DNA of 64,000 nucleotides from Marsupella aquatica (taxonomy: Eukaryota > Plantae > Marchantiophyta). The stretch lies in contig OZ316898.1 of the NCBI GenBank assembly GCA_973895155.1, positions 12,175,187-12,239,186 on the forward strand, given 5' to 3'. Under the pieces are notes generated by a model. It was not told the origin of the DNA and did not search any database. It was given only the letters and a program-made list of their open reading frames with translations. The number at the start of each line of letters is the position of its first letter. The first letter of the stretch is position 1. Positions 15,316-58,000 of this stretch are shown piece after piece. The translations under genes and the position numbers were made by a program.

Positions 15316-16665
15316 TGGCCTCATAATGTACTAGTGGAACAAATCTCTCGTTGAGCTCAAGGATTATAGCATGATGGGGGCCGTATATATAAATGGACCC
15401 CATACTAGCTTTTTATCTCGGTGTGTGTGCTGGGGGGGGGGGGATCTTCCAAGATTTTCCCCAAACAATTGTAAACAAAAATCCCTCATGGACTAGCGCA
15501 GGGTATTCTCTTCCAACCAGTTTTTACTTGGTAGACCCCAGTAAAAGACAATTAAAAAATACACAACTGGGGGTTTCTACCTCAAGCCAATTTAATGACT
15601 TGAGAGTTCCCTTTAACCCTTGTCATGGGGAAGAACCGGTTGAGTGATTTCCTTCAAGCGTCCAACCCCGCGCCCAACAAAAATAATTTGAACCCAAACC
15701 CTTGTTTGCATAGCACTTCTGGTTATCTTAACCAGCCCGCTACCAAGTTTTAATTATGAACAACTTACTGGCTGCAACCCAAGCAGTAACCACACACATG
15801 CAAAGGATGGGTCCGAGGCCTGTGAGAAAGTAAGGGAGAAGGATAGGGGTTGGGCAAGTGAGTTAGTCAGACAAGGAAGAGGTCCCGATTTGAGAGTACT
15901 CATCTACTCAGGTTGCCATTCACACAGTGGCACAGCCCCCCTCAAATTTGACTGCTTGAGAACTCTCGGCCCGGTTGTAGCCAGTGTTGGTGCGCCCAAG
16001 CGCATCCCTGACCGCCCTTGAGGTGATTTGTTTTTGTTTTTCATATTTAAAAAGCACTACTCTGGACAGTATTGTGAAACCGAAAGGCATTGGACTAGTT
16101 ATACTATAGTATAGATATGTGCATGGGAGAGTGCCTACGTAATGTGTCTACCGGGCACATACTGGATGTTTCCACGCTGAGATCAGTGCGAGGCCATGGT
16201 TGGGCATTTGGGCACTTGGGCGTGAGTGAGTGAATGTGAGTAAGTTAGAGCTCGTCCGTGTTAACGTCCCTGGGCCACGGCGCGAACACGATTCTGGCAG
16301 TGAGTAAACTCGGGTTAAATGAGATTAAAGAGCGAGGCTAAGAAGTTAGTGGCATCGTGGGGAATGGGGACTATGGAGTCCTCCGGTGGAGGGACATTAG
16401 GAGGAGCAGCAACAGCTGCTTGTTGGGCGGAACGTGAGCACTCATAACTCTGCTTACACGGACCTGTGACGCAATTAATGCAGACGGAGCGTGGGATCGA
16501 TCATGAGATCATCCATCCATCAGTAGTAAACTGTTGTCTGTTGATCGTTGTCTGCACCATTACCTCTGCTCCCTCAAATTATGATTTTCAGGTGGCTTTA
16601 TACGTATGATCACTGTTGCAATTCTGTCCCCTAATGCAACAGTGCCCCCCATCTTCTCCCCAACA

Positions 16666-16724
16666 CCTATTTCGTTTACTTATAAAAGACAGCAGCCCTT
16701 CTCCCGGTTTCATCAGTTCGCTAG
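16666..16724 (+). promoter_or_regulatory. Pol II core promoter of pri-miRNA copy A
   Basis: CTATTTCGTTTACT-TATAAAAG (TATA at 16681), then TCATCAGTTCGCTAG about 30 bp downstream. Conserved in copies B and D. Confidence 0.75.
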
Positions 16725-17449
16725 GTAGCTAGGAGTAAGACTGCCTTCGTGGCTTAGTTGTTGATGAGTGAGTGAGTGAGTGATCGACTTCTACTTCCTT
16801 CAAGAATTGATCCGTTTGCGGCCTCGTCCTGGATCGAGTGATCCAGGCAGACGAGGTAGGAAGCCAGAATCCTTGACTCGATCGCAGACCCGCCAGTCGA
16901 TCGATGTTAAGTAGTCAGACTCGCTCTCGTCCTCTCTATCGCAGCGAGCTGGCCGAGATCCACCTCGCAGGTATTAGGATATTTCGTTCATCATCGACCT
17001 GCTAGAACACGGAGGTCCAGAGTCCGCACTCTGGCTGCTACTGCTGCCTAGAGCTGCAAGGGATTGGCTTCATATCATCCTCCTTCCTTCCTTGGTTACG
17101 ATCCTCGTTCCCTCCTGCCGCCTGTTGCTGGCTGATCAAAGTGATTTCGAGTACCAGTGATATTTGAAAACGTGTACACACCCGAATTCTCAGCAGCAGA
17201 GGATCATCCGTCATCCTCTGGGTTGAAAGGTGAATGTACTCGGGCCGCCTTTGGGCATGCACTTTTAGATCGTCAAATAGCAGTTGATTGATCAAGCAGC
17301 TGAGTGCGGCCCAAACCCAGGCAGGCAGCGGACGGACGGAAGTACGGACATACAGGCAGCGACGGGCATCGTTGACTGGCGCAGGCTGGAGTCGACATGC
17401 CTTCGACACGGCAGAACAGCAGTGGACGGGACGTCATGGTTCCCCACAT

Positions 17450-17544
17450 GGTTTTTGCGCTTGCACATTGGTCTCTTCACACACAAACATTAGCCGGGTG
17501 CGGTGTTTGTGTGAGAAGAGGCCAATGTCCAAACGTAAAAAACC
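17450..17544 (+). ncRNA. FRH1: pre-miRNA hairpin A, predicted mature 17508-17528 UGUGUGAGAAGAGGCCAAUGU (FRH1-like)
   Basis: 25-bp upper stem with one mismatch and one G:U, plus a lower stem. 21-nt arm with 5' U. Matches my recollection of Marchantia FRH1; needs miRBase confirmation. Confidence 0.8.
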
Positions 17545-20500
17545 CTTCTTACGTAATTCAGATGGCGTGACCCGGGCCGCTAAGAGTGTTACGGGATTCG
17601 AATCGAAGCTGCAGTCGACCTTCCAGTTTCCAAGGCTCTTGTAGAAGATTGTGTGCAGCAAGGGGATCACTATCAAATAAGCTTTTAATTTCATGACTTA
17701 CAGCTACTTTGCTCACTCAGGAATGAGTGAGCATCCTCTAGATTCAGAGACCACCAATGTACGTACCAGTGAGGAAAGGGAGACTGCGTTCGTTGCAGCA
17801 GCAACTGGTTGGCAAGGAACAAATTGAAAGAGATGATTACTAGTGCGCTTACTACTTATAATCAGCATGGTTTTTCCTAGACCTCAAGTCATGAAGATCT
17901 CCTGATACTCAAACACATCGGTTAATTTGTTGCCTGAGCCGAGGTGCAGAGTTCGGTTCTTCAATTGAGATTTCGAAGGCCAGATTTAAATTGTCGGAGC
18001 TAGCTAGTCTGTATCTCAAACATTTCAATTCGTGTAAACTCCGCCAACAATGTTTGTACTTTTCTGCAATAAAGTCCTTACATATTTCAACTCGGTGCAT
18101 ATTTACATTCTGAGCGTCGGTTCTTTATAATAATTTCTTTCATCATTATTGATATCTGATTCTTGGGAGCAAAGTCGGTCCAATCGATTTCGTGTAGCGT
18201 ACACCAGGCAAGAGTGCCATAGACGACCGGGAGGGGGGGGGGGGGCGGCCGCAAGGAGCAATCAAGTCTAGTGCCTTGTTGCTCTCGGACGACAATGGTC
18301 GTGATGCTTCCCGTGACTTCACATGTTCTAGGAATTCTTTCATTACCTGTGTCACGCGTCTCACTAGCTCGTTTTGATCAGGATGGAAACTTTTGCTCTG
18401 CTGTGGGATTTCAAATTGAATTTTCCAATCGACTATGGATGCAGCAGGTGGAGTGGCTTAAATCACTGGAGAGCGCAGGTGTCGCTGTCTGAGAGTCATG
18501 GGTTGATGATAAAGCATTTGACACAATTCGTCCGGGTTTTAGCGTGTTCTGTCATCTCATGCAACATCGCTCAGTGCCTGCGCGCGTCTCCCCTCCAGAA
18601 TCCCAAGTCTGTACTGAACCCGTGTACTTGAAATTACGTCAAATTCAAGCTTAATAACGATCTAGTAACGCAAGCAATGATTTTTCATATCTAACCTTTT
18701 CGAAGAATGTCGATAGATTAATTAGAATTGAATTCAGCTCCGGCCATTATATCGAAGCTGCCAGGCGGGCTGCTAGGCAAGCGCTGCATCACGAAGCGAA
18801 TTGCGATTAGGTACGGACCCAGCTCCTATCCACAGCTCCAAATACTGTGAATTTGGGTGTAGTACGTACTTAATCCTGTGAAGTACCATTTTGCCAAAGA
18901 TCAGCAGCTCAAGCTTTTCTTTGGATATTCAAGCTACCAAGGATATCATGAGACACAGTGGCTCCGATATATTTGAATCTTCCGAGTCGGTCATCATCCT
19001 TTACGTAATATCGATGGGCAAAAATTGAAGCAGAGTCATGATGGATCGAACAATCAACCCGTTTAAGCAACATTTGATTCTCTGAGCGGTGACACTTAAT
19101 CAGTCAGATAACATCGAAGCAATTTCGAATTTAAGTTAATTGTAACGCCCGAGCTGCTACAGTCGTGAATTATTAAAACCCGTGTGCTCGATCAGGATAT
19201 CCCTGAAGTTCATATAGTGGTTGTCCTTATACTTCCGTAATGAGTCCAATGAACCACCGATTTCATTTGAGCTCCAGTTTCTTTACGATACCACTTCTTG
19301 GTTTTAGGAACTGCCTTAGACTTTGGTGAATTTGGAGGAGAAAGTCTATGATCAAAAGATGAAGAAGTATAATAGGTGTGTACATTCAAGCTTGTGTACT
19401 ATCACTCCCATCATATATGCCCTCACTTGGCGCTTTCTTCCATCCATTGGAGTGAAAGAAGGCTTGTGTACTAGCAGTCTAGTCATGCTTGGAAGGCAAT
19501 AGTTCCTGGGTTCAGAAACATGAGAGCAGTACAGTTCACTCGGGTACAGTTCACTCGGGTACTCGGAAGTCGGTCTTTCAAAAGGCGATCTAACGCAAGT
19601 TAAAACCTGCAGTCTAAACACTCCAAACGTTATGAACTCGATCGGTCTTCAGGAGGAGCTTGAGGAGTCTGTCTGGAACGAGTCGACTGCATTTCACCCA
19701 GGTCTTGCTCATGGGTTCAAATCATAAAAAAGATAATCTGTGACGATAGTATGGTCACGACGAGCTCACACATGTGAGGCACACAGGGAGCGGTCCTGTT
19801 TCTGAACACAGTACTTGTTAGTGATTTGGTAGCTAGCCTGCGGTTTAGCTATAATACAAGACAAGAACCATCAGCAAATGAGAATCGAACGTTAACCAGA
19901 CTGGTACAGAAGTGCTGCAAGACTACAGGCCGCATGACCAAGGGGCCATTCGGTATATCGCATTTTCTTCTGTCAGTAAAAGTACCGGTTGACGTACGAG
20001 GCTGCCAGAAATCGTTTGGTGTGCTAGACGTCCCTCGTCATGACGTGGGAAGCATTCTATTCGACGGCTACTGGTCATGGCAGTAAGGCAGCAAAATTGA
20101 TCATGACCGAGACTTACAGCTCGACTTAAATTGTACCAACGTTTTAGCCCCGCTTGACATTATTTTGTTTCTCACGATGCCAAACGGCAAGCTCAATCCG
20201 AACCATGGAGATTAAAGGATTTTGAAATTCGTCTACTGTACAGCTGCGGTCGACCCCAATCTTCACACCCATCACCGTACTTTCCTCCGGAACATTCTCG
20301 CCACAAACGAACGACCGGCCGAATTCACTAGTTATTTCGCTGCTTGGTTTCTGTTCTACGAGCGCAGACATCCAACTGCTGTTTAGATTGAGCCGGATGT
20401 CTCCAGTTTCTTATATTGCCCAGAATGAATCCTGCATGGTTGTGTTCTTAATTTATTTCGAGCAGTGGAAGACGTCGTTGCATCTAGGAAAGTTCAGCAA

Positions 20501-23500
20501 AAGCGATATCGCGAACGAATTAAAACTAAAAGATCTAAGATCGACGACGACAGTTGTAAGTCGTTATAGCATTAAAAACCATTTTGTCCTAATATGTTTC
20601 GATTATAGGAAATGTCCTCTCAATCCGCAGAAAGAATATATATGAGAATCATTATCCCTTGAATATATATATTAACAAACGCAACTAATATATGGCGCAA
20701 CCTTGCTAAGCACGGGATATTTCTGATCTGGTAAAACGGCCAGTAGCTGCAAATGAGAACAAACTGTTACATTCACACTCGCTCGAGCTTGATCCAGATT
20801 GCAAATGAATTCGAAATGCTCTAAACCTTCTTGAATTGCATTCACAGTTGCTCCAGCTCGATCGAGATTGCGAATGAGTTCGAAGTACTCTAAACCTTCT
20901 TTAATTGCATCCACAATACTCGCAGACTTGTCGACGAATTTAACAGAATGTCATGCATCAGCTATCTGAGTATCTTCAAATCATGTCCATCTACATCAGT
21001 TGTTCAACGAACTAATAAAATTACATTTCCTCCGCCAATATATTGTCAACACTAATTTCACTACCATGATGCTAATGTTTTGATTCCACTACATATCATG
21101 ACTTTTCGTCATATGAGAAAAAAGTCTTCACATCAGCTCAATTCGAAGTAGTCCACGAAGCGTTTCGATATTTAACCAGTCAATGACGGTAACGGGACCG
21201 CTGCACTGTAAATTTGGGAGTGTCTGAGTGAGTCATCGATCTACGCTGTCTGAAATCGTATGCACAAAATTTTGAGCGAACTTTCAGCAGATAATTGGCC
21301 AGGTCTGCGGTGGGTTGAAGGAGGACGTACACAAAGGCTTGCGGGCCAGGAACAGAGGGGGCGTGGTTCATACATTTGACATCATGGTTCTCATTTCGGG
21401 CGGCCTTGTTGAGGTCACATAGCGACAATTGGTCACAAACTGCTTGGGTTAATCATCTTTACTGGATAATTGTATCCACGTGGCACAATTGTCAATTTAA
21501 GAGTGTTAGGTTGCCTTGGGGGTCCAGGCAAGAATTAATGTCTTGGTGGCGAATCTTCTCAGGTGAAGCACTGTGCTGTGGAGAGAGGCTTTGCTTCTAC
21601 GCTGTGAGCTTGGATTATTGATTTTTCGCCCTATTTTTGGTCCTGTCCGTATCCATACTAATTTGCCGAGTTTGTACGTTAACAAATATGTCGGATCGAA
21701 TGAAAGATATATTTCAGACTGCCAAAAAGCAAATGGCGCCCGACCGGGAGACATGATCCCTCAGGCAAAAAACCCAATCAAGGGGAACAACCAAGGGGCC
21801 AAGAAAGGGCAAGAATGTGAACAAAAGGTGATCGATGCCAAATGGTGAGAGCTAATCGTGGATATTAATCGCACCAGTGCGCGGAACGAGTAATCTTTCC
21901 TAGTGAATGTGCTTTATGGCGGACCCGGGGCAGATGTTCAAATGGACTATGGACTGCCTTTGCAGATTTCTTGAATGCGGTAACTGTGTTGCAGATGATC
22001 TGGAAACTTAAGGTTGAAATATAGGAGCATGCACCTCGAACTCAAGCAATTCTGATGGGTATGGATCCGTTGTCAGTGCACTATATATATTTGCATGTGG
22101 AAATGAACTTACTAATTTTTAGGATCACGCGCGGAGCTGCAACATGTTTCAACTGCTACAAAGTTCTGCACCCTTGAGGTTCATTCAGTCACAGAAGGTT
22201 AGTCTTTCCATACCCAGCGCCTTGGGGCATGGGTAAATTCCAAATTAACTTATGGCAATGTCACTACCTGGAAAGATAGCCTGAGTAGACCCAATTCGAT
22301 GAACCGAGTTTCCAGAACTCCAGCTTGAATATTTCAAAGAGAAACCTGTCTGACGAAATTTACAAGCTTCATCGTCGATCCGAAGTTTTGAGAATTTTAA
22401 GTTAGCCAGGCCATAGCTAGCTTGCTCACTTATTAAGTCATACTAAGCAATCCAGCTTGTGGCCAATGAAAATTTAGGGGAATCTCTCTGGCTAAATCCC
22501 AAACACTGTAAACGTCCACGATGAATTTAACAACTAGATCCGATCGGCCCCACTTTGAGCTACATCTAAGACGTACCCCCGGACGTACCACTGTGCATTA
22601 CAATACCAGCTCGTCTGCACATACAGTAAATCGATGACGCTGTTGATGCTGAGTCACTAGGAAGTCTAATTAAATAGGGCGAGAACTATGCCCTTGAGCA
22701 GTCCTCACCTTGTGAGGCTTGGTCATCTAGCTCCCCACAGGACCAAAGTAGTGCGTCCGTATGTTCAGCCTAAAGGTTAGGCATGGATCATAACCTCAGG
22801 GTCGATCTTCCAAATACCGTTTTCGATTCTCTTCTTGAATCTAAGTTTCAAGAGAATACACAGCTAATGCGCGCACTGTCCGAGACTTGCACCAGATTTG
22901 AAATTTTGTTGCGCAGTGCCTATCTCTGATTGCACCTTCCCTTCACCGAGGTCAGGTCATATTGTACGTCCACCGTTTCAGCATCTACTGTAGCTAGCTT
23001 CTTCAAACATTTTACAGGCTACGGACCGGGAAAGTCGTGGACAAGCTATACGAATACGAATAGCCGGTGAGTATCCTTTCGCTACTTGTTCTGCTTACGT
23101 ACCTGGGCAGTCGAGAAACATTTTCCCGGCCACCGTGATCGTCAGAGATACTTAAAACAGGTGGTGTGTTCAGGATGAATCGAATACTGCAGGAGATACT
23201 GCATGCCTTGGGGTGGGCGCGAAGACCTTCGGTAGATTATGTCCGCGACAGAACTCTGTTCATTTGGACTTCTTTGACCTTTAATTCATACTTAATTAAC
23301 TAGTCCATCCATCCCAGATTCCACTGACCACTCAAATCTCATTAGACATATATAGTTATGTACTACCATTACCGCCGTGTTTAGCTCTTCTGTGGAAAAG
23401 AATAGAACGGACTGAAGAGTGCTCCGCATCCCATGATGACATTGAACAAGTATTATAGCTAGAGCCTAGCTGCTTCCTTGTTAACCTTATATCCCAACGT

Positions 23501-26500
23501 AACCTATAACCTTCGTAGAACTGACAGAGTGTACAACACCATCAGTGCTGATGGATTGATCCAGTAAATGGTGCATGATGTCGTGAAGGTATCGACGCTG
23601 TCCGATCATCCGGACAACTTAATTACACGGTGCCGCACGATGTTGGCTAGCTACTTACTTTCTTAAGGTGTTCAACAGTCTGACCTAGCAAGACAGTCAG
23701 GCATTTAACCATTCGGTCACTCTGGAGATGGAGAGGGATTGCTGGCTTAGTAGTAAGGTAAGGTGCCACTATTGCGATGCCGTTGGAAGCAACTGTCAGC
23801 TCGATCCAAGCTTGTCTGAGGTGAGTATATACACGTACTACACCACGGACCGAACAACGCAGCTAGTGCTGGCATGGGATCCTGGAGCATGTAAGCATTA
23901 CGTGCAACCTTCAATAAAATCCCTATGTCTGCCTCATTACACAGGCATCCTCAGGGACCGGGGGACCCTGGAGACGTACTGTACCTTCCACAGTCATAGA
24001 AAGTTCAGCTGCTTGTCCGTGAAAGACAAGAGAGAAACGACCCAAAAATTCATGCACACCCGTTTGATCAAATTCACTGCACAACTGCCTGCGCTGTGGG
24101 CCGGCCCCAGTTTCCACCGTCATTATATCCAATCTGTACACAGTCATCGATAATGTCCTGTGCTTTCTCCTTACATTTTCTTCGTCTTTTTTGTTCCCAC
24201 TCCCAGCAACAGTAGTCACTGTACAACACCAGTAACAGGTAAAAGTGTTCAACAGCGGTGAAAGTGCAAAATCTCCCCGGAATAATCAATCAATGCCATC
24301 TTTAGTTAGTTTTGTCCCACCACGCATGATCAATACCCTGTCCAGGTTCAGAACCATATTTTTCGGAGGTGCTTCTCTTGTCTGAACTGTCCCCGGCACG
24401 GGATGCGACGGCCAAGTTTATAATGTTCACGGAGCCTTGCCTTAAACCCATCAATTCAGCAGGGAAAAGCTCACATTAACTTGCGACGGGCCCACTCTCA
24501 CTGGCAGCCCAACTCGATCAGCAGGGTGAAATGGCGCTAGCTGGGCTAGCTCAGCGAACCTATCAGTAGGCACTTTCCTACATAACGGTAGAGACAAGTC
24601 TGTCGGCTCTCTTGCACTCTAGTCATTCATTCAGCCCAGTTGACAGAATCTTCATTGTGTATGCTATAGCACATCAGCCCCGAACCGTGCGCACTTACCC
24701 GTTGTGCTGGACTGATAGTTGTCGGATGCCGTCCTTAACAATCTGCCTCCTTGCAAAGAATATTTTATTTCATTACAAATGATAGAGAAACCACGAACTG
24801 TAGAGCATTGGGAAATGGCAACCCATGGATAGTGTAGGTGACACAGACCACATTTCCCTCCGCATCACTTACCCTAGCCTGAACTTGGTTCGCGGTTATT
24901 TAACAGGTGGCCCTTGAAATCTTTTGCAGCCAAAGGTCACCCCTGATAAAGTCTGATAGATAACCAAATATGCACAAGCCTACTATTTCAACAGAAAACG
25001 GCTAGTTTTCATTGACATTAATTTTACATTAAGTTTGACAAGCTGGTGTGTGCAGAACCGAATTTCCTCCCAAGACGTGCATATTTTCCAGCCCACCATT
25101 TCTGGGATCACATTAACTTGTTCCCTCGGTGCCATGTGTAGTAGCCAATCCCAAAACTTTCCACATACCACTTCATAAATATCCTTGTATATTTTGCTAT
25201 TCATTTGTTCCCTTATCTTTGGGGGAGAATTTTAGGGTATTCTTCAATGTAAATAGCTGGTTCAATATCTCTGTATTGCAAAAAAGATGTTGTTGCATAA
25301 AGGATGTTTAGGCATGAAAAGATTTTATTCTGCAAAGAACTTTGTTGCTATACCAAGTGGTAATTTTGGTGTAAGCTGCATCACACCTACACACCTACAC
25401 TGTTCACCATAATCACTGTTATGCAAGAATTGGTGTTAGTACAAAATTAGTGTTAGTAACACTAATTTTGATAAAACTGATTTTGAGTCCAAATAACACT
25501 AAATTTTGTTGGTTTTCAAAACAGAATTTTTTTTCACTTTAGTTTAAATTTCTTATAAAAATTGGATAGTATTTAGTCCAAAGTAACACTAATTGTTGTG
25601 GATTTTTCAAAATAGGCAAGTGTATATTTTTATATGGACTAAAAATTTGGCTTTAAATTCCTGTTTTTTGAGAGAGCTTGGGTTAATTTCCACTTTTCAA
25701 AATTTTCTGAGTCATTTATAATTTTGGGTTTTTGCACAAAACTGAAGTTTTCCCAAACTTGTTGTAACTTTAATTTAAAAAATTCCTAAATTTCAATGAA
25801 AATCCTAAAATGCTGCCTACAATAGTTTGGTTGTAGACCCTTGAATTGTATTAGAAAGAAGCTATATATATAATTTGGGTTTGATCAATTTTTTCACAAT
25901 CAACAAAAGATGTGTATTTTTTTTCAGGTCGGTATATTTTTAGATTACTTGCCTTACGGGTACAAGAGTTTAGTAGACAAGACTTAAACCTATTTCGGTC
26001 AATATGTAAAAGGCACATTCACCAAACAAGATTGTCTAATATATAGGTGTCACTTGGAGCAGTAACTTCAAGCACCACAGTTGAACCAAAGTAGCTTCAC
26101 AATGCCGCACTGCAATGCAAAGGGCTTGCTTTCTACTAAGTATGTGACATAAACACTCGGTAGCTATATACTATATACCTTTTCTTTGCCACCTTCGCCC
26201 TAGGCAAAGAGTTAGGTACAGTTAATCCTGCCTCCATGAGCTCCACATATTTGCACCAATGCACAAGCTTCAATATTTAGGAATGGCACCCCTGTACACA
26301 ACTCTTGTATAATAGCTGGGGCCTACTCTTTTATATAGATGAAAAGGTTGGCTATAATAAAAAAAATTGAAAACTTGTATAAGATAAAAAAAAACTTTTT
26401 TCCACATAAAATTTCAAACCTGGGTTTTCTAAGCTTGCTGTAATTTTATTGATTTGTATGGAATTTTGATGAAAATCACAAAATGCTGGCTAGTTTGGTT

Positions 26501-27079
26501 ATAGACCCCTTCCTAAAACTAGTTTGTGGACCCCGGCTTTTATGTTTCTGAGTATATTAATGCATGTTCTTTTACAAAGGTTGATGGAGTTCACTTTACA
26601 TGCCAGCTCAATGCAAAGGTTAATGGAATTCACTGTACATGCTAGCTCAAAGCACCCCCCTTTGTCTCTCAACATATGTGAATCGAGCATGCCTCAATTC
26701 TGAGTCAAACCAAAGGATCAAAGACTCTAGAATACATCTCATGGTTATGGTTTGCCTTCGTTAGATTTTGGCAGAATACTTTATTATAGTAGTTCATTCC
26801 AACAAAATGGCTATAGAAAAAAATGTTCATTTTTTAAATTTTTTTTTAAATTTTAAATTCTTTTTTAGGAAAAAATGTTCATTACCCCAGAAGCAATTGG
26901 AAATGGAATTAAACACCACGATGCACAGTAAGTTCAAGATGTGGTTCTGTCGGTTAGGTCCGTAGCGGAGTCCTTTCTTCCCCCCAAACATTTCAATTGC
27001 TTAGATTGAAGTGAAGAACAACGCCGTATTATTTCAATTGCTTTGATTCCAGTGAAGAAGAACGCCGTATTATAGATTA

Positions 27080-27660
27080 CTAGCTCAATACCTGTGCGTT
27101 GCACAAAAGAAGTCGTGTCGGCCAAGATGTCGTTGAGAAAAAATGATGTCATTTTAGCCAAGAGGTCGTGGAGAGAAAAGATGTTGTGTTGGCCAAGAGG
27201 TCTTGGAGAGAAAAAAATGTTGTGTCACCCAAGAGGTCGTTGAGAGAAAAGATGTCATGTCGCCCAAGACGTTGTTGAGAGAAAAGATGTCATGTCGCCC
27301 AAGATGTCGTTGAGAAAAAAAGACGTGTCGGCCAAGAGGTCGTGGAGAGAAATTATGTCAAGTCGCCCTAAAGGTCATTCATTGAGAGAAAAGAAGTCGT
27401 TGGGAAAAAAAAGATATCATGTCAGCCAAGAGGTCGTTGAGAAAAAAGATGTTGTCTTGGCCAAGAAGTTATTGAGAAAAAAGATGTCGTGTCGGCCAAG
27501 ATGTCATTAAAAAAAAAATCATGTCGGCCAAGATGTTGTTGAGAAAAAAGATGTCGTGTCGGCAAAGACATCGTTGAGGGAAAAGATGTCGTGTCGGCCA
27601 AGACATCATTTAGATAAATACCCGTGCATTGCACAAAAGATGTTGTTAAGAAAAAGATTG
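27080..27660 (-). mobile_element. Non-autonomous Helitron-like 3' end with an internal 35-bp minisatellite
   Basis: Minus strand TGTGCAACGCACAGGTATTGAGCTAG-T (hairpin plus CTAG) ending at 27080, with a second copy at about 27610-27636. GTGTCGGCCAAGATGTCGTTGAGAAAAAAGATGTC repeats lie between them. Confidence 0.55.
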
Positions 27661-28085
27661 TTCCTTTCAAACCTTAACCTCCCCCTTTTCCCATTTTCCT
27701 ATTTTTGGTCTTCTCTTTTTCACATTCACCATCACTCCACTTGTTCACCGCCCCCCCTTCCCCACCCATGTGAGATCGAGGGGCTACCCTACATTGCGAG
27801 TGTGCCCCTCGCCTGAGACCTTGCCATCAACACCCATGCCATGCGCTTCACTATGTCTTTAGGCCTTATTACTTTTGTGTTTTTGGCATTGAAAATGACA
27901 CTGCAAATGACTATAAAAATCACCACAAATATTGGGAGAATAGTTTTTTTATTGATGTAGTAACTAAAATGTTGTTAGCAATTAAATTACTTTTATGGAC
28001 TCTTACCATTATTATACAAAATTAGGATGCACACAATATTGAAATATGTACAATGAATATGTACAATACAAATTTGCATGTGAAT

Positions 28086-28333
28086 ATCAAGAACTATAAT
28101 ACACAGTTCCTTGTGCATTGTGTTAAAGTCTTTCACTTCTTTTTTTGTGTACCTAGTGTGATTATTCTTGCTTGTCTTGGGCATTGGTGTAACTTTTTGT
28201 GACTCACACTAAACTCAATTCACATTTTGGCTTTATTGATTATTTTTGATTAAATTTTTTAATTTTTGTGCCCTGCAAATTTGAATGAGGACCACTCTAA
28301 AAAATGACACAACTGTGTATTATAGTTCTTGAT
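28086..28333. repeat. Perfect 23-bp inverted repeat pair (MITE-like, 248 bp)
   Basis: ATCAAGAACTATAATACACAGTT at 28086-28108 and its reverse complement at 28311-28333. No TSD seen. Confidence 0.55.
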
Positions 28334-41747: not shown

Positions 41748-41841
41748 GGTTTTTGCGCTTGCACATTGGTCTCTTCACACACAAACATTAGCCAGGTGCG
41801 GTGTTTGTGTGAGAAGAGGCCAATGTCCAAACGTACGAAAC
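41748..41841 (+). ncRNA. FRH1: pre-miRNA hairpin C, predicted mature 41806-41826 UGUGUGAGAAGAGGCCAAUGU
   Basis: Duplex identical to copy A. Confidence 0.78.
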
Positions 41842-45987: not shown

Positions 45988-46167
45988 ATTTCAGAGCACA
46001 ATTGGGTTTATCATGAAACTAAATAATTTCAGAGCACAATTGGGTTTATCATGAAACTAAGTAATTTCAGAGCACAATTGGGTTTATCACGAAACTAAAG
46101 AATTAAAAATAGATACATATATAGAATAACATTGAACTATTTTAGAGCACAATTTATCATGAACTAA
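45988..46167. repeat. 38-bp tandem repeat, three copies plus one degenerate
   Basis: ATTTCAGAGCACAATTGGGTTTATCATGAAACTAA repeated, in an AT-rich insertion. Confidence 0.85.
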
Positions 46168-46784
46168 TTAAAGGCTAGGCAGCAATGACGGACTCCTAAG
46201 TTGTATTTAGTCATCCGCATGGACTGTCACAGGGAAACAGCTCACTTTACACCAAATCATGACACAATCTAAGACATTTGTCATGTTTGGGCTGGCAACA
46301 CGTTGCACCTCAGTATTGGTCACAAGGGACTACCCGAGCACTAAGTTAAGCATAACTTTTGGCCCCAGATTTTATTTGAGAACAATGAGACCTCATTGCC
46401 ATCAGCATTCTGGTGCCTACATGGGCATGAGAGGGAATATCCAATAGACCTTGTCAAGCTTTGTGGTTGGGGCCAAAACATAACAAACCAAAGTTGTTTT
46501 GGGGGTGATGAGAGGTTACAGAAGCATATATGAACAAGGACATATAGCTACACCGTTCTAACACTCTGCTATTTTAACTTATTGAAAATGATGTAAACAT
46601 GATCTTATCATATCCTATTTTAGTTTATTAAAGTAATCATTTGAATTAAAGTACAGAAATGAATTTATTGTGAAAAAATAGAGGCGCATCAATCTCGGAC
46701 AGCGTGCATCATACAAGCCATAGAATTTATAAATTTATGTAATTTAAGTAATAAATATCATGTCAGCTGCCTAATGTGCGGCAC

Positions 46785-46852
46785 AAACGCTGTAGCACAG
46801 TGGTGGTTGCCTTGTGTGGGATCTGGTGGGTTGGGGGTTCCAGCCCTGCAAG
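46785..46852 (+). other. tRNA-like Pol III A/B-box remnant (SINE- or TE-derived)
   Basis: TAGCACAGTGG (46793-46803) and GGTTCCAGCCC (46836-46846) with tRNA-like spacing. No clear cloverleaf. Confidence 0.35.
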
Positions 46853-49800
46853 AAATACTTATTTTACATCAAGATTATTTTGAATGACAAAATTCTATAA
46901 GAATTGTGTAAAGGAGTATAAGTGCAAAAAAGAGAAACAAAGTATTTTGAAATAATGAAAACATATAGGGGGTCTGAGATAAATTCAAAACTGATGAAAT
47001 AACAAAGAAGACAGCTCTCATATGCCAAATTAAAATTAAAATAATGACAAAATAAAAATGAACTAGGAAGACTGAAACAAAGATTCGCATTATAGCAATG
47101 TCGGAAAAAAGCATATATGAACAAGGACACTATAATACTCACCTGGCCATCCAAAGTTTGTGATCACGTTCACGCACACTAGTGGCCCTGTGATTCACAT
47201 GAAAGCACTAGGTTGGCAACAAGTGGAAATAAGGGGAGATTGATTGGCTTCTAAAGCTCAAGTCACCCTAAGGGGAGGTGACCTTGAGCTACTCTAGTTC
47301 TACTATGCATGAAGAATCTCATCAAGGACCCGCAATATATTGATAGTTAGTTGAGCGTTCTTGGATCTGTAGCGTGAGACCGTCTCTTAGTGACACCAGA
47401 CCATAAATTGCAAAGCTAGCAACAAACGTTATAAGACGACGAATGGCTCCCTTGAGAAAGGGACTGTGCGCAATACTTACCACTTGTGAAGTTGCAAACC
47501 ATCCAATCCCCATGGACTGTGACACACCCTTTAGAGTGTCACGAGTGTCACGTGCTGATCCTCCTCCCACTCCAAGATTTTTTTATGAGCCAATTTAGAC
47601 CTTCAATTTCTCGCTTTATCTGCAATTGAGTGGGTCTTAGACATAATTATCCTCGAGACACGTGACTGTTTGAAATACATCGTTTGCTTACTACAGTTCG
47701 ACTAGTACTGAGCAGTTGTAAGGATCCGAAATAGATTCTGGCAAATTGCTCGCATGCTGAAGCTACTCAGGCTCTTGATCTCGTTGTCAACTTACATGCA
47801 CTACTATTACCCAACTAGCCAAGTAGAGATGTTCGCCGTCATAACTTCGGTGGCATTGCGAACTACATGAGTCGTGTGGGCCAGGACGGTTCTGTACTGA
47901 GCTGCAGTAATATATAATTAAGTCTGATGACTGAGCAGTATTAAGTTTGATGCCTTTGCTGCCGGAGGACTTGGGTTGGACAGGATTGACCTTGATTCTG
48001 CATTGCTAATTAATTACTGCTGCTGCTACCTTCTAGAATTGTATATTAAGGTTCCAGACCAGACCAGCTAAAGTGGCTCGCTGTTGTGGCTGTCTTGCCA
48101 TCGATCTTTTTGTTAATCCCCACAGCTACAATGACATGGCTGGAGGTCTGTGCTGTAGCGCTGTAGAATCAGCAAAATCAATATATAACCTCCTTCGGAA
48201 TCTAGTTGGATAGAATGCGCGGGTTTGGGTTCAGTCCACTATTATCAATTCAAATATATTTTAATCTTCATGAAAGTACAGCCATGTGTAGGTTATGTTA
48301 CCAGATTCGCTGCATGCCCCAGGCCTTCACTCACTGCAGGACGAACACAACCTCTTGCAGCAGCAGTTAGTCCCATTAGACCATTCTGCTGCTGGCTCTC
48401 GATGTGGTGCCATTTAGTTTGATCGTGGCTTGCTTCGTTTTGGTATTTCTGTTGAGAAATTCAAACCCCAAAAACGCCGCCGTGACCAAAGCGAGGGAGG
48501 GCAATATTTTGACGCGTTTTTGCACTGAAGATCCACCCGGGCACGAGACTTGAGTAGAAACGAAATCATGCCAACATGGGGAAAAGTGAAATTTGTCCAA
48601 TCAGAGCAGCGTATTTGGTACACATGGCATTCCAACACGGAGATTGCATTGGAAATATACACCTGCAACGTTTGGGCCTCGACTGGATGCCATGTGAATT
48701 GGTACTAGACCATGTGGGACGCACGTGATTGGAATATCTGGGATCCCACGGCTATGACTCCATAAATTCTGCTGAGTCTCTAGGCTAAGGATTTTATTAT
48801 AGTTTGTTTGTACAAACTTGCAATTTGTTCAATGGATAAGTTCTTAATTATTGATTAAGCAGGCATTCTAATAATATAATTGCATTGCAACAACTGTCTT
48901 CGTTAGTTTGCATAGGATAGCGCAAGGGCAGGAGATCATCCGGTATAATATTTAATTTGATGCTCGACGGACAAGACGACCGGGCATCCAACTGTCCTTG
49001 TGAAGGACTAACTTGTCTACCTTGGTATCTTGCAATCTTCAAGGAAGAGTTTGTTATTAAAATTTCGATGTTTTGCTGTTCGGCACTACCTCAAACATGA
49101 TGATTTCTTTTGAAATTTTTCGGTTTACCATATATGATATTTAGCTTTACAGGGCAGCTGCTATTGGTGACTGCCTCAGGCAGACATGATCAATTTCCTT
49201 GAAACTTTTCTCCTATTCTTGCAGCCGCCAAGTATTCCAGTGTTACGGAGGCAGTGTACTCTTCAATCTGAATGTGTCAATTGAGTTCCTGTTGCAGTAC
49301 TAGTTAAAGTGATCCATGAGCTCGAGTTACCAGAATGATTTGTGGTACGTCAAGTTATCCAAATGAAAGATGTCGTCCAGCGAAGCAGAATGCTGATTGG
49401 TTGGATCGAGACTTATAAATTGCCCATGATGATATTGGAGCTCCAGCCGCTGCATAAGGCTTTCGTCATCTTCATTGTCTAACGAAGAATAAGGCTCACG
49501 TCAGGTTTCCTGTGGATTGCCTGCAGTTTTCAACGATATTCCTAGTTTCTTCGCCAGATTCTGTTACAACAGTTTCGATAGAGTGATGGACGGGCTTCAT
49601 GCTCAACATTGCCAGCCGGCAGGGGATCTTCAATTAACGTCAACTTCTGCCGCCACCACAACACTAGTATTCGAATAGATGAGGACTATTCCAATCCGCG
49701 TTACTGAGGATACGTATAGGTCGCATACTTGCCAGCGAACATGTTTCAAATTAACGTACCTTGACAATCTTCAATCCACAACGCTATGACCTTTTTGCCT

Positions 49801-51439
49801 AGCCTCTTCAACTGTCCAGCTTGTTGATTGCTAAAATCACTCCCCGAACACAGTTGAATAATACATATATAACTCGGACACACATCCAAGTTGCAATAGA
49901 ACTTTAAGGGGCTTTACAGAGTGGAAGAGACAAGTAATGTCCTCCCATTTATATCCCTGTCTATCATTAATTTTGTCATACTACTGTAATTTCAACAAAT
50001 ATCACAGTTCATTTCCAAGCCAATTTTCTCGAAGAACTCAGCCATTCGTTGGAACAACGATATTGTAAGATACACCTCGGGCAATTTTGATGTACTCAGA
50101 ACATCCTGAGTGAGCAACTTTGTGTACGTGCCGTTCCAGAACGAAAGGGAAAAAGACTAATTATGATGGGACTTCGATCCTTCTAGAACTCCTCAGATAG
50201 TCGTTACTTAATGTCTACTATCTGCCCCAGCGCTAGCTAGCTTTACTCAAAACTTTTGCTCGATTTCAGAATCCCTTTATGCGGAACAGTTGTCTGAACA
50301 GTATTCATCACGTTTGAAAAAATTACCCTGCAGCAGGTCATTTTCACTTTATATAATACCTACTCTCAGGCGAAGTATATAGAGCTTGTGGGGAATCTTG
50401 TCATCTGCATAGACGTCGTCAACTAAAATGTTCCCGAAACACGCCACATTAACCTGGGAGGTAAATAAACGTGGGCCAGTAGGGTTAGATATCAACTGAA
50501 TCCTTCAGTAACTGGGAGAAATTATGAAGACCATAATGATGGACCAGAAACAGCCCCCAAAGTAACTTTGCTAGTAGGAACTTTGCAGTACACGAAGGCT
50601 ACTATCGAGGAATCCCGTGGTTCACGGAAGTGCAGTAATCTGGGAAACCATTGGACTTGACAAGCGATCGGAATTTGAACCAACTTCTAAAACCCCTCCC
50701 GTGAATTAGCTGGACAATGGTGTTATTGAGGAGAATAACGGCAGGATATGTCCGATAACAAATCTTCTGTATGATGTTTTGAGACAAAGGACACAGCGGA
50801 AAAGTTATTTTCATTTAACAGAACTACCTTCATGAGAATCGCCTCTTCTTCGTCCTATGTGGCTTGCTATATTATAATTTGACCACCATGGGCACTTGCA
50901 GTTCTTTGTCATCAGCATCATGAATTTTGAGGGCAATAACTTAAGAGCTCTCAGATGACCATTTCACCAAGAGAGACCTAAATTCGAAATTTTCCCCTTG
51001 ATTACTCCAAGAATCTTGTGCAGGGCGTGCTCCTGAGGGTCGAGCTTGCGTCACGCCATCCTGAACAGAAGCAGGTGTCGTCAATTTCTCGTCACTCAAT
51101 GGCAGCAAATTCTTAAGTTGAATGCATGCAACAAAATTGAGTTGGTCATATAACCATAAACTAATGAGCAAAACCCGGGGTAGTAATGATGAGCTAAACG
51201 CACTTTATGAAGTTTAATCAGTGGACCATCTATATTTGACCTGTCCATGTACGATTCCACTAAGACATTCTAATCATTGAATTGAGCAACGGACCTGACA
51301 GAGGTCAACCCAGAAACCTTCAGTTCCAATAAATAAAGACGTGGTGAATTTGAAAAGCTAGGAGACGAAATTAAAAGACCAAGACTGCCGTACATAGGCC
51401 CAATCAGTCTTGCCGAGACAGATTGGGCCTATGTGACCG

Positions 51440-53300
51440 AGAATGCTGCAGAGATACATATTTGCAGGACTAAATATATCATTGGAAGAAGCCAACCAGC
51501 CCGGGAACCAGCCTTTTATAGAATTGGTGTAAACTGTTGCCAAATTTTGTGGCTTTACTCGTCTACTGAGTAGGAACAATTAAGGCTCATTTGAGTCAAA
51601 ACCCGACTTGTCTACTTGTGCTGCAAATCATTTTTGCACAATACATTAGACCTCGGATGCCTTCTTCATCAAGAATCTTATCCAATTATGATCAGTGAAA
51701 TTTTGCAGCTCGACAATCCTTCTCTACAAGGGAGTGAGCTCATACCAAATATAGTTTACTTTACTTAAGCACAACCTGAATATCAAATTAGACAGGACAA
51801 AATGATCACCGGGATTATCGAGACCAGAAAAGGGTGAAATGTGGTCAGATAAGCGCTTCACCTATTATAGGTAAAATCGGGGGGTAAATCCGGCTGCCTC
51901 TCCCCTGACAGAATCCTTTGTGGACAATGTCACTATCGAAACTACGATTCAGGTACTATCCAAAAGCTGCTGCATTTGCTTTGATCAGGTGAAGCTTACA
52001 GTTGGACGTGTGGCACACAATCTTAACGTTGGGAATCAGACTCTGCACTCCTACACGTGACCAGAGTTTTGGGCGCGTGATTTACATATTTGTGTTGTTG
52101 ACAATCATAATACTCCAAGTTATTGACATTTCCAGTAACACCGAGAACTAGGAATGACTCTTATATATGACAATATCCCACCAGAATTTTGCTCATGTCG
52201 TTTTCAACTCCCAGCTCAAAAGGATCGTGCACATTTCTAAGACACATCTGCGGATCTTCTACGACTACCGATTCCAAGCCCTGGACCTGCTTGCTCTACA
52301 CAATGAACCAGGTCATTGATTTCCTCAGTCAAAGACTAATGCATGATTTCATTTTCAATGGCTTTCACAACCATACCTACACAAATCAGAAGCAAATACA
52401 CCGGTAATGGTCTACATCTCTTGTCTGGCTAGTTTTATAGAAACAATGAGTGTACCTGTCGTGCAATGTCCCTGTGAAATGCTACAATCTTGGTTCGGGC
52501 CGATTTGGAATGTTTTCTGTTGCCTTATTAACTGCTTTGACCATGCCAAGGTGGCCTGTACTCACAAAAGTCATGCACAAAGAAATGAGAATGATAGGAA
52601 TACAACAGCCATTGAACAGAATACGTTTATCGAAATACATCAGTAAAATCGAGCATGCTAACTTAGGAAAACTAATTTGCGGCTGAAAATTGCTGGGGGC
52701 TTCAAATAGTCATCATGTGCAGGTAATTTGTTCTTGGCACAATTAAAGAAATCGCAACACTGCTCCAATACTACTCCCGTTTAGAAGAATGTTTAGTCCG
52801 AATGATGAACAGCATTTTTTATCGCTAATCTGAAACGAAGTTTGCGCATCTAAGAAGGTACTGAAAAGCTTTAGTTTACAAAGTGAGCAGATTTGTGAAA
52901 TCCAAAAATACTCGCAATGTACCACTGTTTCCTGAACTCCGGGATGCAAAGGAAGATTTCTGGGAAGGGATTCTTTTATATAGGACCTTTCGCTTGTCAA
53001 CCTCCACCCCTAATCTCCCCATATGTACGTCAACTCACCCTGCAGCACATGATCCAGAATCGAGCCCAGACTAAGTTTGAAACAATCCATCTTTGTTCAC
53101 AGGATTCGGATCACATCCACTTTTAACAATTGTTCAATGTAAGCTAGAATTTTTTTATCCTGCTCACAAGAAATTCTCCCTCTCATGTGAACATCTTAGG
53201 CCATACGTACAACATTCGTAGTCAACATCTTATGAAATGCAACATGAGCTTCTTGTTTAGACTGATAAGGAATGAAAGCTGCCGACTCTGTTCAGGTTTG
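51440..53300. repeat. Module X copy 1 (homologous to about 61930-63975)
   Basis: Collinear similarity, e.g. TTTTGCAGCTCGACAA...CTACAAGGGAGTGAGCTCATACCA. Reading frames are broken. Confidence 0.8.
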
Positions 53301-54718
53301 ATGCGCATTATGATAGAGCTCTGAGTTAACTTAATTAAAACCATCTGAATCCAACTATTGTGCATTTAAGTGAATCATGTAACATTCCCGGTAACATCTT
53401 AATTGCAACCTCAATATTCATAGCGGGCTCCATGTACTTTCGTTTTGTTCCAACTTTGGAGTATATTGTAATCACATCCATAGAAAAGTGAATGATACAA
53501 CTCTTCTTGACATCTGCATCCCGATTTGTATCAAACGGAGGCTGGGAACACAGGGCAATACCGCAGGATAAGACGATTGAATGCCAAATTTTCTTCATTT
53601 TGTAATCCATACTTGTAGCACTTGACTGATGTACATGTCTTCAGTTAAAGGTCCCAAGGAGGCTGAAACCAAACAGCAGAGAAACTGTCTTGAGTAATGA
53701 CATTAATTTATAAAAGACACGGGCCGTATACTTACAAGGCTCATTACTTGATTGGGATCAGAAAAATGAGGAACTCGGCCACACAAATCCCAAAGACTTA
53801 AAGTGAAACTAGGCGACTTAACACAGTAGAGTTGGCGTAATTCGTGTCCCACTGACCACCAAATATTCTTCTTGCTAATAGACCTTTGACTGGTTAGTCA
53901 ACACTTGCAGCTCACCTGCTCCTTGAAGTGGAATTTGATGGTCTTTAGGAAATTATTTACGACAACGCTATTTATGCTTCAATTGTGTTAGCCAGCACCA
54001 ACCTGAAGAAGTCTATGCTTCAGATCCTGAATATAACCCGCTCCAACCCAGAAGAAGAGATCTTGCGAGTCAGTCCAGCTGGTCCTTCTCTGTTTTCTGA
54101 TGTATGTGATTACATACAACGACTGACAATTATACTCACTTTCAGCTAACCCAATATCAACAGGTATGAACTACTTCGAACAGGACCACTGTCTAGGTTG
54201 ACGCGGGGGCTGAAGTTTAACCAGCTCCGTAAAACATATATGATCGCCCGTGTTCTTTCATTTTGCAATACGGGGAGTGTAGAATGGAGTCCCAGGATTA
54301 TCGAGGGGATTACGAGAATGGAATTTATTGTGCGGTTGTAACAAGTCAGGTCAGGCAGGTGTTTCGATGTGTTTCGTCATCTTGATCGATCCTAGCTGTG
54401 GGGTATGCGTGTCCTCTCTGTTCGGCCGTCATAATGTAGCGGACACATGATGGCATTGGGGAGCTATAAGTCTCGCAAGCAGGTACGCTTCCTACTCCCT
54501 AACTAGACAAACAACTTAAGTAGGGGTCAGTTCTCCAACGATGAGACGAAATCAGCAGTGACATCAGAGATTGACAATTATGTCATTCCTTGAGAGAATC
54601 CAAAGAGCTTACGTACCATGAATTACTCTTCTTCAATGGTCACCTGTTTGAGCCATTGCACAAACAGTTTCAAATCTGTCGCCGAATGCAACAGTAACCC
54701 CAATCTTCGCTTCAACAA

Positions 54719-54775
54719 CTATTTCGTTTACTTATAAAAGACAGCAGCCCGGTCCTAGTCTCATCAGTTCGCTAG
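54719..54775 (+). promoter_or_regulatory. Pol II core promoter of pri-miRNA copy D
   Basis: Same TATA block (TATAAAA at 54733) and TCATCAGTTCGCTAG. Confidence 0.75.
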
Positions 54776-54982
54776 CTAGTTAGTAGTAAGACTGCCTTCT
54801 TGACTTAGTTGCTGGTGAGTGATTGATCTACTACTACTTCCCTCACGAATGGATCTGTCAGCGACCTCGTCCTGGATCGAGTGATCCAGGCGGCCGGACG
54901 AGGAAGGAAGCCAGAATCCCTGACTCGATCGCAATCGCAAATTAACCCAGCAGAACAGCAGTGGATGGAACGTTCCCCGCAT

Positions 54983-55077
54983 GGTTTTTGCGCTTGCACA
55001 CTGGTCTCTTCACCCACAAACATTAGCAGGGTGCGGTGTTTGTGGGAGAAGAGGCCAATGTCCAAACGTAAAAAACC
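54983..55077 (+). ncRNA. FRH1: pre-miRNA hairpin D, predicted mature 55041-55061 UGUGGGAGAAGAGGCCAAUGU (U5G variant)
   Basis: Homologous hairpin. G55045 pairs with C55014, where the other copies have a U:A pair. Confidence 0.75.
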
Positions 55078-58000
55078 TTTCTTACGCAATTTAGATGGCG
55101 TGACCCGGGCTCCGAAGAGTAACGAGACTCGAATTAAAGCAGCGGTCGACATTTCATTCTCAGCAGCTATTGTAGAATCAGCAAGACGATCACAATCAAC
55201 TACGCAGGTAAGTTACTTTGCTCACTCAGGGATGAATAAGCACCCTCTACATTTAGCGACCACCTACGTACCTACCAGGGAACGGGAGACTCTACGTCCT
55301 TGCGGCAGCAGCTGGTTGGCCAAAAATAAGTTGAAACAGATGATATATTACTACGGTGATTTTTAGTCACCTATGATCCGCATGGTTTTTCCTAGACCGG
55401 AAGTCATGAAGGGCCCAGTACGATTTCGTTTAATAAGCTCTACTCATACTCAGATACATCGGTTTGTTGCCTGAGCCGAGCTGCAAAGTCTAGTTCTTCA
55501 GTTGAGAGATTTCGAAAACTTGTTGTAGCTAAATAGTCTACATACCTAGAACATTGCATTCCTGGAAACTCTCCAAACAATGATTTACAATTACTTTTGT
55601 GCAATAAAGACCAGTTTGTTTAAAGTCCTCAGTGCATATGTTACATTCTGGCATCGATTCGTTATGATAGTTTTTATTTCATCTCATTGATGTCTGGCTC
55701 TTGGGACCGGACCAAAGTTGGTGCGATCGATTCGAATCAAGATTTTCTACCATCACTCCAATCATGCCCTCAAGCTTGTGTACCATCACTCCAATCATGC
55801 CCTCACCTGGCGATTTCTTCCGTAGTTATTGGAGCTAGTCAAAGAAGGCTTGTGTACCATCACTCCACTCATGGCATTCCAATGAGGCGCAATCGTTCTA
55901 GGGCTCAGAACATTACAGAGCAGTGCACTGGGGATGTACTTAATTCCTCTGTAGTTGGTCTTGCACAAGGCGATCTCGCAACTTAAACCAATCACCTGTC
56001 GTCTGAAGACTCTAAAGGTAGAAATTAACAAGGAGTTCGTTATGGGACCAATTGACTTAATTTCACCCAAGTTTCGTTGCTGAGCCCGTTGCTGAGTTCA
56101 AATCCATAAACTAAGAAAGATACCTTGTGACGATAGTATGTTCAGGACGAGCTCAGACATGTGAGGTACAAGGAGCGATATTCTGCATGAACCCAGCACT
56201 TGTTTGTGATTGGTAACTAGTATGCGGTCTTAGGTAGAATACAAGACGGTAGCAGCAAATAAGAATCGAACGTTAACCAAACCAGTACTGCTTTAAGATT
56301 AGATGCCGCATGACCAAGGACGTTCACAGTTCACCAAGGCATTCACAGTTGCTCGCGCTCGATCGAGATTCAGAATGAGCTAGAAATGCTCTAAACCTAT
56401 TTTAATTGCATTCACAATCGCGGACTTGTTGAAGAATTAATGGAATTTCATACGTCAGTGATCTTCAAATTGTGTCCGTGTACATTAGTTGTTCAATGAA
56501 GTAAACAAATCATAACACCTTCGCCAATTGTCAAACTAGTTTACTACTTGGACTTTCAAACATTTAGTTGCCAGAGCTGAATTCAATCGCTCACCGCTGC
56601 ACACTCGACTAGGTTATTTGGCGAGTGCGGGCTGAGAATGTTTTGATATATATGATCTCATATCATGACTAGTTCATTTGGTGATGAACTGTGCGCGGTG
56701 AGAATGTTTTTTGAGTCCACCGCATATCGTGACTTTTTGTCCCATGAGAGAAAGGTCTTCACGTCTTAACAACTAAATTCGAGGTGTGCACTAGGCGTTT
56801 CGATCTTTAACCAGTCAATGACGATAACGGGAACCGCTGCGCTGTTCGAGAAGTTCTGAGTGAGTTGCACGCTTTCTGGAATAGTACGCACAAAATTTTG
56901 AGCTGACCTTCATGCACCAGCTAGGTCTGCGGTGGGTTGGAGGAGGACGTTCACAAGGCTTTGTGGCCAGGAATAGAGGGGCATGGTTCCATATATTTGA
57001 GATCAATGAATTCCAGGCAAGAAAGTCTTGGTAGCGAATCTTCACTGGTGAAGCCCTTGATACAGTGCTTCTTCGGTAAGCGGCCTTGCTTATACATGGT
57101 GAGCTTGGAACTTTGATTATTCTCCTCGTTTGTTTTATCATACAAACTTTACGAATTTGTTCCCAAATATATCCAAATGCACGAATGTCAACAAAGGGTG
57201 ATGCCTAATGGTGTGGAAATGAATCGAAACACTGCAATCTATGTACAGATTATGATCTGCGTTTCGTGTGTTCAACGAGTAGTTTTCTCTTACTTGATGT
57301 GCTTTATGGCGGACCTCGGGCGGACCTTTATATGCACAACGTACTGCGTTGCAGATTTCCTGAACGAGGTAGGGTTATGTCCCAGATGATCTGGAAAGGT
57401 CGATATCTAGGAACTTAACGCCTCGAAGATATCCTGGTGCGAATGGATCCGTTGGCAGTGCATGAAACAATTTGCCGAAAGACTAATATACTAATTTAAT
57501 CGACAGAACATTAGTCTTTCCGCGCCCAGCGCCTTGGGGCATGGGCGATTTGCAAAATTAGAGTTAGATTACCGTAATGTCTGTTCACTGGAAAGATAGC
57601 CTATTTGTCCGACCCAAAGCAACCGAGTTTCCAGAAGCGCTTGAATTTTTCAAACAGAAACCTGTCTGACTGCCAGTGCAATTTATAACCTTCAGCGTCG
57701 ATCCGAAGTTTTGAGCAGCATCCGTTAGCGAGGCCATAGATTGCTTAAAAAGTCACTTAGCACGCTAGCTTGTTGCTCATGAAGTTCTGGAGGAATCTCG
57801 TTCGCTAAATATCAAACCCTCAACAAGTTCATTTATTATACAACGAGATCCGATCGGCCCCACTTAATTTGAGATACAAGTAGGGCGCCATTGACGACGT
57901 ACCTCTGTGGATTATAATACCATGCAGCTCCTCTGCATGTACAGCACATCGATGACGCTGTTGATGCTGAGTCACTTAGTAGGAAGTCTAAATAGAACTT

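Follow-up and report, generated by a model that had tools for sequence, protein, structure and literature searches.

In the liverwort Marchantia polymorpha the microRNA (miRNA) FRH1 behaves as the product of a single locus, deletion of which abolishes detectable FRH1 miRNA, and a reading of the DNA studied here from its letters alone (below, the sequence-only reading) had correctly said so. What, then, are the four FRH1-like hairpins that the same reading pointed out within 64,000 nucleotides (nt) of another liverwort, Marsupella aquatica (contig OZ316898.1 of assembly GCA_973895155.1, positions 12,175,187 to 12,239,186 of the forward strand; this whole stretch is the window of the following text, and all positions are counted from its first letter)? 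We think it probable that they are four paralogous FRH1 (MIR11861) genes that arose by an old tandem segmental duplication and that are not the published M. polymorpha locus, MpFRH1.

The four hairpins

The hairpins had been described as ~95 nt long, beginning at 17450, 34613, 41748 and 54983, and all four are present at these places on the plus strand; each is ~96 nt long and forms one long imperfect stem.

17450-17545, plus strand: FRH1 hairpin copy 1; predicted miRNA* at 17467-17487, mature 21-mer at 17508-17528, exact FRH1
34613-34708, plus strand: FRH1 hairpin copy 2; mature 21-mer at 34671-34691, A>U at position 17
41748-41843, plus strand: FRH1 hairpin copy 3; mature 21-mer at 41806-41826, exact FRH1
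54983-55078, plus strand: FRH1 hairpin copy 4; mature 21-mer at 55041-55061, U>G at position 5

A profile derived from these hairpins and run over the 64-kb window found exactly these hairpins and no degenerate fifth copy, and in a sliding fold scan of 15-64 kb they were the strongest on the plus strand.

The mature MpFRH1 miRNA (mpo-miR11861) was published as UGUGUGAGAAGAGGCCAAUGU (PMC6141232, Honkanen et al. 2018). This sequence occurs exactly at 17508-17528 and 41806-41826 and with one mismatch at 34671-34691 and 55041-55061, which bears out the earlier naming of the 21-mer as liverwort FRH1. Comparison with the MpFRH1 precursor was made by searching two short arm patterns and by inspecting the remainder of the transcript by eye. 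Shared with MpFRH1 (PMC6141232; Thamm et al. preprint 10.1101/854869) are the 21-mer itself, identical in copies 1 and 3, the location of the miRNA on the 3' arm of the precursor, and both arms: the 41-nt 5' arm of M. polymorpha matches copies 1 and 3 at 38/41 (3 mismatches), and 29 nt of its 3' arm match the four copies with 0, 0, 1 and 2 mismatches (29/29 at best), where the number of such arm matches expected by chance is 0. The M. polymorpha loop (~18 nt) and the rest of its 1.2-kb transcript could not be aligned with the window, as judged by eye, and arms that are conserved around an unalignable loop are the usual pattern of orthologous pre-miRNAs. By sequence, the window hairpins are homologs of the MpFRH1 precursor, and because loop and flanks differ the window is not the published locus.

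In the searchable literature the FRH1 sequence was found only in the M. polymorpha paper, and no mention of a second FRH gene was found there; the name of the miRNA carries no a/b suffix, while Mpo-MIR11680a in the same tables has one. Reviews treat the FRH1 gene as known from Marchantia alone, and one from 2023 describes the module as "identified only in Marchantia". The age of FRH1 had been deduced from target sites conserved in other liverworts, and the RSL class I target site is reported to be 100% conserved in 12 liverworts. Two metagenome scans at the Joint Genome Institute (JGI), one with the 21-mer and one with the two-arm pattern, returned no further homologs. No part of the window matched an Rfam family at gathering thresholds, and permissive E-values gave only generic hairpin matches far below threshold; the miRNA FRH1/MIR11861 appears to be without an Rfam family.

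Fold of the hairpins

All four hairpins fold strongly, with minimum free energies of -45.6 to -52.7 kcal/mol (z of -6.8 to -8.3 against dinucleotide shuffles, 0/200 of which were as stable as the real hairpins). The lower stem spans ~15 positions: a bulged A separates its first 7 bp from a run of 3 bp, a C/A mismatch and another 3 bp come next, and a C/C mismatch ends it. The duplex region above it pairs over 14 bp and, past the A.A mismatch at miRNA position 7, over a further 10 bp, and is closed by a loop of 12-14 nt. Standard pairs fill 96.6% of the 148 pair cells of the four copies, and this value falls to 35-53% when the partners are slid by 1-3 columns. The criteria for plant miRNAs that Axtell and Meyers set out in 2018 reportedly call for a foldback shorter than 300 nt and a duplex with no more than 5 mismatched positions and no large bulges. 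At ~96 nt, and with one duplex mismatch in copies 1 and 3 and two in copies 2 and 4, the hairpins here have the fold and the duplex of a plant miRNA gene.

Conservation of the hairpins within decaying flanks

The four copies were aligned from -1000 to +1300 around the hairpins, and the strictest comparison was with the downstream flank that aligned best, over its 552 ungapped columns. Identity in a 50-column sliding window of the four-way alignment is 0.92-0.94 at the hairpin and 0.0-0.77 elsewhere, and mean column identity in the hairpin alignment is 95%. Only 12/94 hairpin columns are variable, as opposed to 213/552 flank columns (p=3e-7); all six pairs of copies differ less in the hairpin than in the flank (Fisher p 1e-6 to 0.012), and Kimura two-parameter distances are 0.22-0.30 in the flank and 0.03-0.12 in the hairpin. 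Had hairpin identity been no higher than that of the flanks, the sequence-only reading would have lost its basis, and the reverse is what is seen. Its description of the hairpins as nearly identical holds; its description of them as free of indels holds for copies 1, 2 and 4, in which there are none, and not for copy 3, which has a single 3-nt gap at the base.

The hairpin is the sole block that is at least 90% identical in all six unit pairs, and the conserved tract is ~130 nt long. Within the hairpin, the 5' lower stem is invariant (0/15 variable columns); the corresponding counts are 2/21 for the miRNA, 3/24 for the star arm, 4/16 for the loop and 5/17 for the 3' lower stem. We regard it as likely, as we do the reading as a whole, that purifying selection acted on the RNA and preserved the hairpins as the units around them decayed. 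Constraint appears in this pattern on the duplex and the 5' lower stem, and it extends to the core promoter (below).

Promoter blocks and predicted transcripts

The sequence-only reading had placed three of the hairpins downstream of a conserved TATA/initiator block, and such blocks, exact or with one mismatch, were indeed found upstream of copies 1, 2 and 4. These and the downstream part of the predicted copy 1 primary transcript (pri-miRNA) are:

16666-16724, plus strand: TATA box and initiator block of copy 1; predicted start at ~16717, ~730 nt upstream of the hairpin
33862-33919, plus strand: TATA box and initiator block of copy 2; predicted start at ~33912, hairpin ~700 nt downstream
54718-54775, plus strand: TATA box and initiator block of copy 4; predicted start at ~54768, hairpin ~210 nt downstream
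17546-18190, plus strand: downstream part of the predicted copy 1 pri-miRNA, moderately conserved (identity 0.6-0.77)

A 23-nt TATA block that contains TTATAAAAG precedes copies 1 and 2 in exact form and copy 4 with one mismatch; the 15-nt initiator block TCATCAGTTCGCTAG, which begins 21-22 nt past the TATA block, does not differ among the three. The hairpin of copy 4 lies only ~210 nt from its predicted start because ~500 nt that are present in copies 1 and 2 are absent there. The homology of copy 3 to the other units starts only at ~41320, and a TATAAAT at 41281 is its sole candidate replacement promoter. The M. polymorpha FRH1 promoter ends in ...TATATAAATGCCCGCAGGCGCTCTTTCTCCCTCATCATT, with the transcript beginning directly after it (PMC6141232 supplementary files); its counterpart in the window is TTATAAAAGACAGCAGCCCTTCTCCCGGTTTCATCAGTTCG, and when the two are aligned by eye a TATA box, GCAG, TCTCCC and TCATCA-TTCG stand at similar spacing.

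Candidate poly(A) signals are AATAAA at 18068-18073 (copy 1), AATAAA at 55603 (copy 4), ATTAAA at 42437 (copy 3) and AACAAA at 35415 (copy 2), all ~0.5 kb past the hairpin; the transcripts of copies 1, 2 and 4 are predicted to end just beyond 18073, 35420 and 55608, respectively. Since the copies are 7-17 kb apart and three of them have promoter blocks of their own, separate transcription is likelier than one polycistronic precursor.

In the 5' part of the predicted pri-miRNA there is also a GC-rich stem-loop at 16821-16857 (-27 kcal/mol, z -4.25), which is kept in copies 1, 2 and 4. A piece like 16736-16874 is found in contigs of two organisms with both of its flanks foreign to the window, and these foreign flanks mean that the piece is also present elsewhere in the genome.

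State of the individual copies

Substitutions that are private to one copy, counted over the hairpin and over the flank columns defined above, differ among the four:

Copy 1: hairpin 0/96, flank 45/552
Copy 2: hairpin 5/96, flank 32/552
Copy 3: hairpin 2/96, flank 35/552
Copy 4: hairpin 4/96, flank 52/552

Judged by these counts copy 1 is clearly constrained, and it looks fully intact. Copy 3 looks to have an intact hairpin and no recognisable promoter. Three of the six differences between copy 2 and copy 1 break pairs, the change at position 17 produces a U.U mismatch, and the lower stem is weakened; its candidate poly(A) signal departs from the canonical form, and large deletions have affected its unit. 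With its promoter present and its hairpin slightly degraded, copy 2 may be under relaxed selection or decaying.

Copy 4 has kept a promoter block and a canonical candidate poly(A) signal. Its U>G change at miRNA position 5 is compensated by an A>C change in the star arm (A-U to C-G), and a C.A mismatch lies opposite position 18; in M. polymorpha the position-5 pair, as read from the published transcript, is a G.U. A compensated change of this kind arises in 2-3.5% of simulations with 4-5 random substitutions. Together with the promoter block and the poly(A) signal, the compensated variant suggests that the copy 4 hairpin stayed under selection after its mature sequence had changed. Copy 4 looks intact, with a one-base miRNA variant.

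The duplicated units and the integrity of the array

Self-comparison of the window divides the region into four head-to-tail units of unequal length, all in plus-strand orientation and with approximate limits:

~16612-33500, plus strand: unit 1
33565-41300, plus strand: unit 2
41320-54400, plus strand: unit 3
54430 to beyond the window end (64000), plus strand: unit 4

The units are colinear, with flank blocks that are 66-82% identical by BLAST and that carry many gaps, indels, and large deletions and insertions. As in a tandem MIR cluster, four plus-strand hairpins of the same family lie in four adjacent colinear units. The units contain no recognisable protein-coding gene: no Pfam domain was found in them except that of a relic of the long interspersed nuclear element (LINE) type, and no reading frame is common to them. 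The relic (37268-37902, minus strand; weak zf-RVT match, E 4e-4) lies in a part of unit 2 without counterpart in the other units, and probably belongs to the insertions that fragmented the array.

An assembly error was considered as the source of the repeated units and is ruled against by contigs of two further sources, namely another sample of the same organism and an organism diverged by roughly 1.4% (a figure that follows from a 31-mer share of 0.61-0.67). These contigs carry the copy 1 sequence, substitutions of the copy 2 type and the 3-nt deletion of the copy 3 type. The contigs of the same organism also hold unit-related pieces, including a copy 2-like hairpin with a different 3' flank, in contexts foreign to the window, and from these foreign flanks it follows that the genome probably has further related copies and that four is a minimum. 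In addition, 6-9% of the sampled 31-mers of 16650-18250, the copy 1 transcript region, are present in several other organisms and in air metagenomes, a share that corresponds to about the size of the hairpin; this hints that the hairpin, its loop included, may be nearly identical in related species.

Other features of the units are as follows. The second-best conserved block lies 3-6 kb downstream of hairpins 1, 3 and 4 (23604-23660, ~44790-44850 and ~58890-58950), has a three-way identity of 0.85-0.91 with an invariant run of ~30 nt, and is missing from unit 2. It showed no significant fold, no shared open reading frame and no Pfam match, and may be a distal regulatory element or belong to a further non-coding transcript. 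A 200-nt stretch (30661-30866 and 49342-49549) is 97% identical between units 1 and 3 in a surrounding block that is 76-80% identical; a local conversion tract and a conserved element are both possibilities for it. When the blocks 23575-23720 and 30655-30800 were folded, the 30661-30866 stretch on either strand, no significant fold was found. Self-comparison also revealed internal tandem-repeat arrays at 30-825, in the transposon-rich left part of the window, and at 27105-27658.

Selection, conversion or a mobile element?

Several observations weigh against the view that these are four FRH1 genes maintained by selection. Private substitutions in the copy 2 hairpin are about as frequent as in its flank (5/96 vs 32/552); the TATA and initiator blocks are both missing upstream of copy 3; covariation in the stems is not significant by shuffling (123/500, with only four sequences available); root-hair-element/RSL-type motifs and G-boxes were not found in the promoters; and the contigs that carry the locus came only from DNA-type sequencing runs. 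Because the shuffle control for covariation is not significant, the structural argument depends mainly on the stability of the hairpins and on their pattern of conservation. And because copy 3 has lost its promoter and copy 2 has pair-breaking changes accumulated at flank rate, not all four copies are clearly under selection now.

The alternative that survives best is that there is one working gene, most likely copy 1, and that the other hairpins are dead and have been kept alike by short gene-conversion tracts copied from this master. The proximity of the copies and their common orientation favour conversion, the tract that is conserved is short, and the missing promoter block of copy 3 and the broken pairs of copy 2 would be expected of dead copies. 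Conversion tracts would not be expected, however, to have the same borders in all six pairs, nor to have them just at the hairpin base. Copies 2, 3 and 4 also carry private substitutions (5, 2 and 4, respectively), the compensated pair among them, that recent conversion would have erased, so each copy's own changes argue against recent homogenisation, and the arms are conserved against M. polymorpha, where conversion cannot act. We give this explanation a small chance of being correct. That each hairpin is instead an inverted repeat belonging to a small mobile element spread by transposition, like FRH1 in sequence and without miRNA function, is scarcely credible: unit-related pieces do stand in contexts foreign to the window (the 16736-16874 piece and the copy 2-like hairpin with another 3' flank) and transposons crowd the left part of the window, but the units run colinearly over many kb as adjacent head-to-tail copies, the arrangement that unequal crossing-over would produce, the hairpins of the promoter-bearing copies keep a fixed place downstream of a TATA/initiator block, and the exact 21-mer and both arms match a functionally proven precursor of another species.

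Four paralogous FRH1 genes that descend from tandem duplication thus remain our preferred explanation, and parts of the earlier interpretation need to be narrowed under it. The proposal that the miRNA gene is the selected cargo of the duplications agrees with the hairpin being the only block so conserved in every pair and with the lack of a protein-coding gene, and it goes too far in so far as copies 2 and 3 are not clearly selected. The family may be "diversifying" on the strength of two single-base mature variants, those of copies 2 and 4, and a "dosage-expanded" family would presuppose that several of the copies are expressed. The picture of a dosage-expanded and diversifying cell-fate miRNA family is, on this sequence evidence, partly supported.

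Proposed function and relation to known systems

If the four copies are FRH1 genes, each unit would originally have been its own RNA polymerase II transcription unit of ~1.4 kb. In such a unit the initiator would follow the TATA box at ~30 nt, with the hairpin coming ~0.7 kb into the transcript and a poly(A) signal another ~0.5 kb on. A lower stem of ~15 nt below the duplex is the plant layout that directs base-to-loop processing by DCL1. Base-to-loop cutting by DCL1 would release the 21-mer from the 3' arm of the window hairpins, which fits their ~15-nt lower stem under a 21-nt duplex. The miRNA would be expected to cleave the mRNA of the RSL class I basic helix-loop-helix (bHLH) gene and thereby to restrain the initiation of rhizoids, papillae and gemmae, as in M. 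polymorpha; for the window copies, transcription, processing, target and phenotype are all proposed by analogy with that species. The RSL1 gene itself lies outside the window.

The predicted transcripts would resemble that of MpFRH1 in being long and non-coding with the hairpin ~0.65-0.75 kb from a TATA-driven start, and in similar letters, by eye, at the TATA box and the start. The differences from MpFRH1 are the four tandem copies here versus the single locus in M. polymorpha, the loop of 12-14 nt versus ~18 nt with transcript flanks that are unalignable by eye, the one-base mature variants encoded by two of the window copies, and the one copy without a promoter block.

Tandem duplication of MIR genes, with hairpins that stay conserved while their spacers diverge, is a familiar way in which plant miRNA families grow (the MIR395, MIR169 and MIR166 clusters), so the kind of event seen here is already well known in plants. 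Like those clusters, the window holds same-orientation paralogs within tens of kb that have kept their hairpins, have diverged in their spacers and differ slightly in their mature sequences. Unlike them, its copies are spaced 7-17 kb apart and have separate TATA blocks, which indicates independent transcription instead of a polycistronic precursor, and the FRH1 family is liverwort-specific. The MIR genes of M. polymorpha are reported to be mostly single, with one polycistronic locus noted.

What is apparently new is FRH1 as a multi-copy family, and its occurrence outside M. polymorpha; the locus is direct evidence of an FRH1 precursor in another genome. We are doubtful of the further step of taking the array for a functional innovation and not mere redundancy, with copy 4 as a paralog that has been retargeted or tuned differently, or with a dosage from several active copies that alters lateral inhibition and thereby rhizoid density or patterning relative to single-copy M. 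polymorpha, and would grant it only a low chance. Read as four paralogous genes, the locus would mean that FRH1, a cell-fate miRNA sensitive to dosage, can form a family of several genes that includes natural variants of its sequence, and with such a family the effects of FRH1 dosage and of FRH1 variants on rhizoid patterning would become testable.

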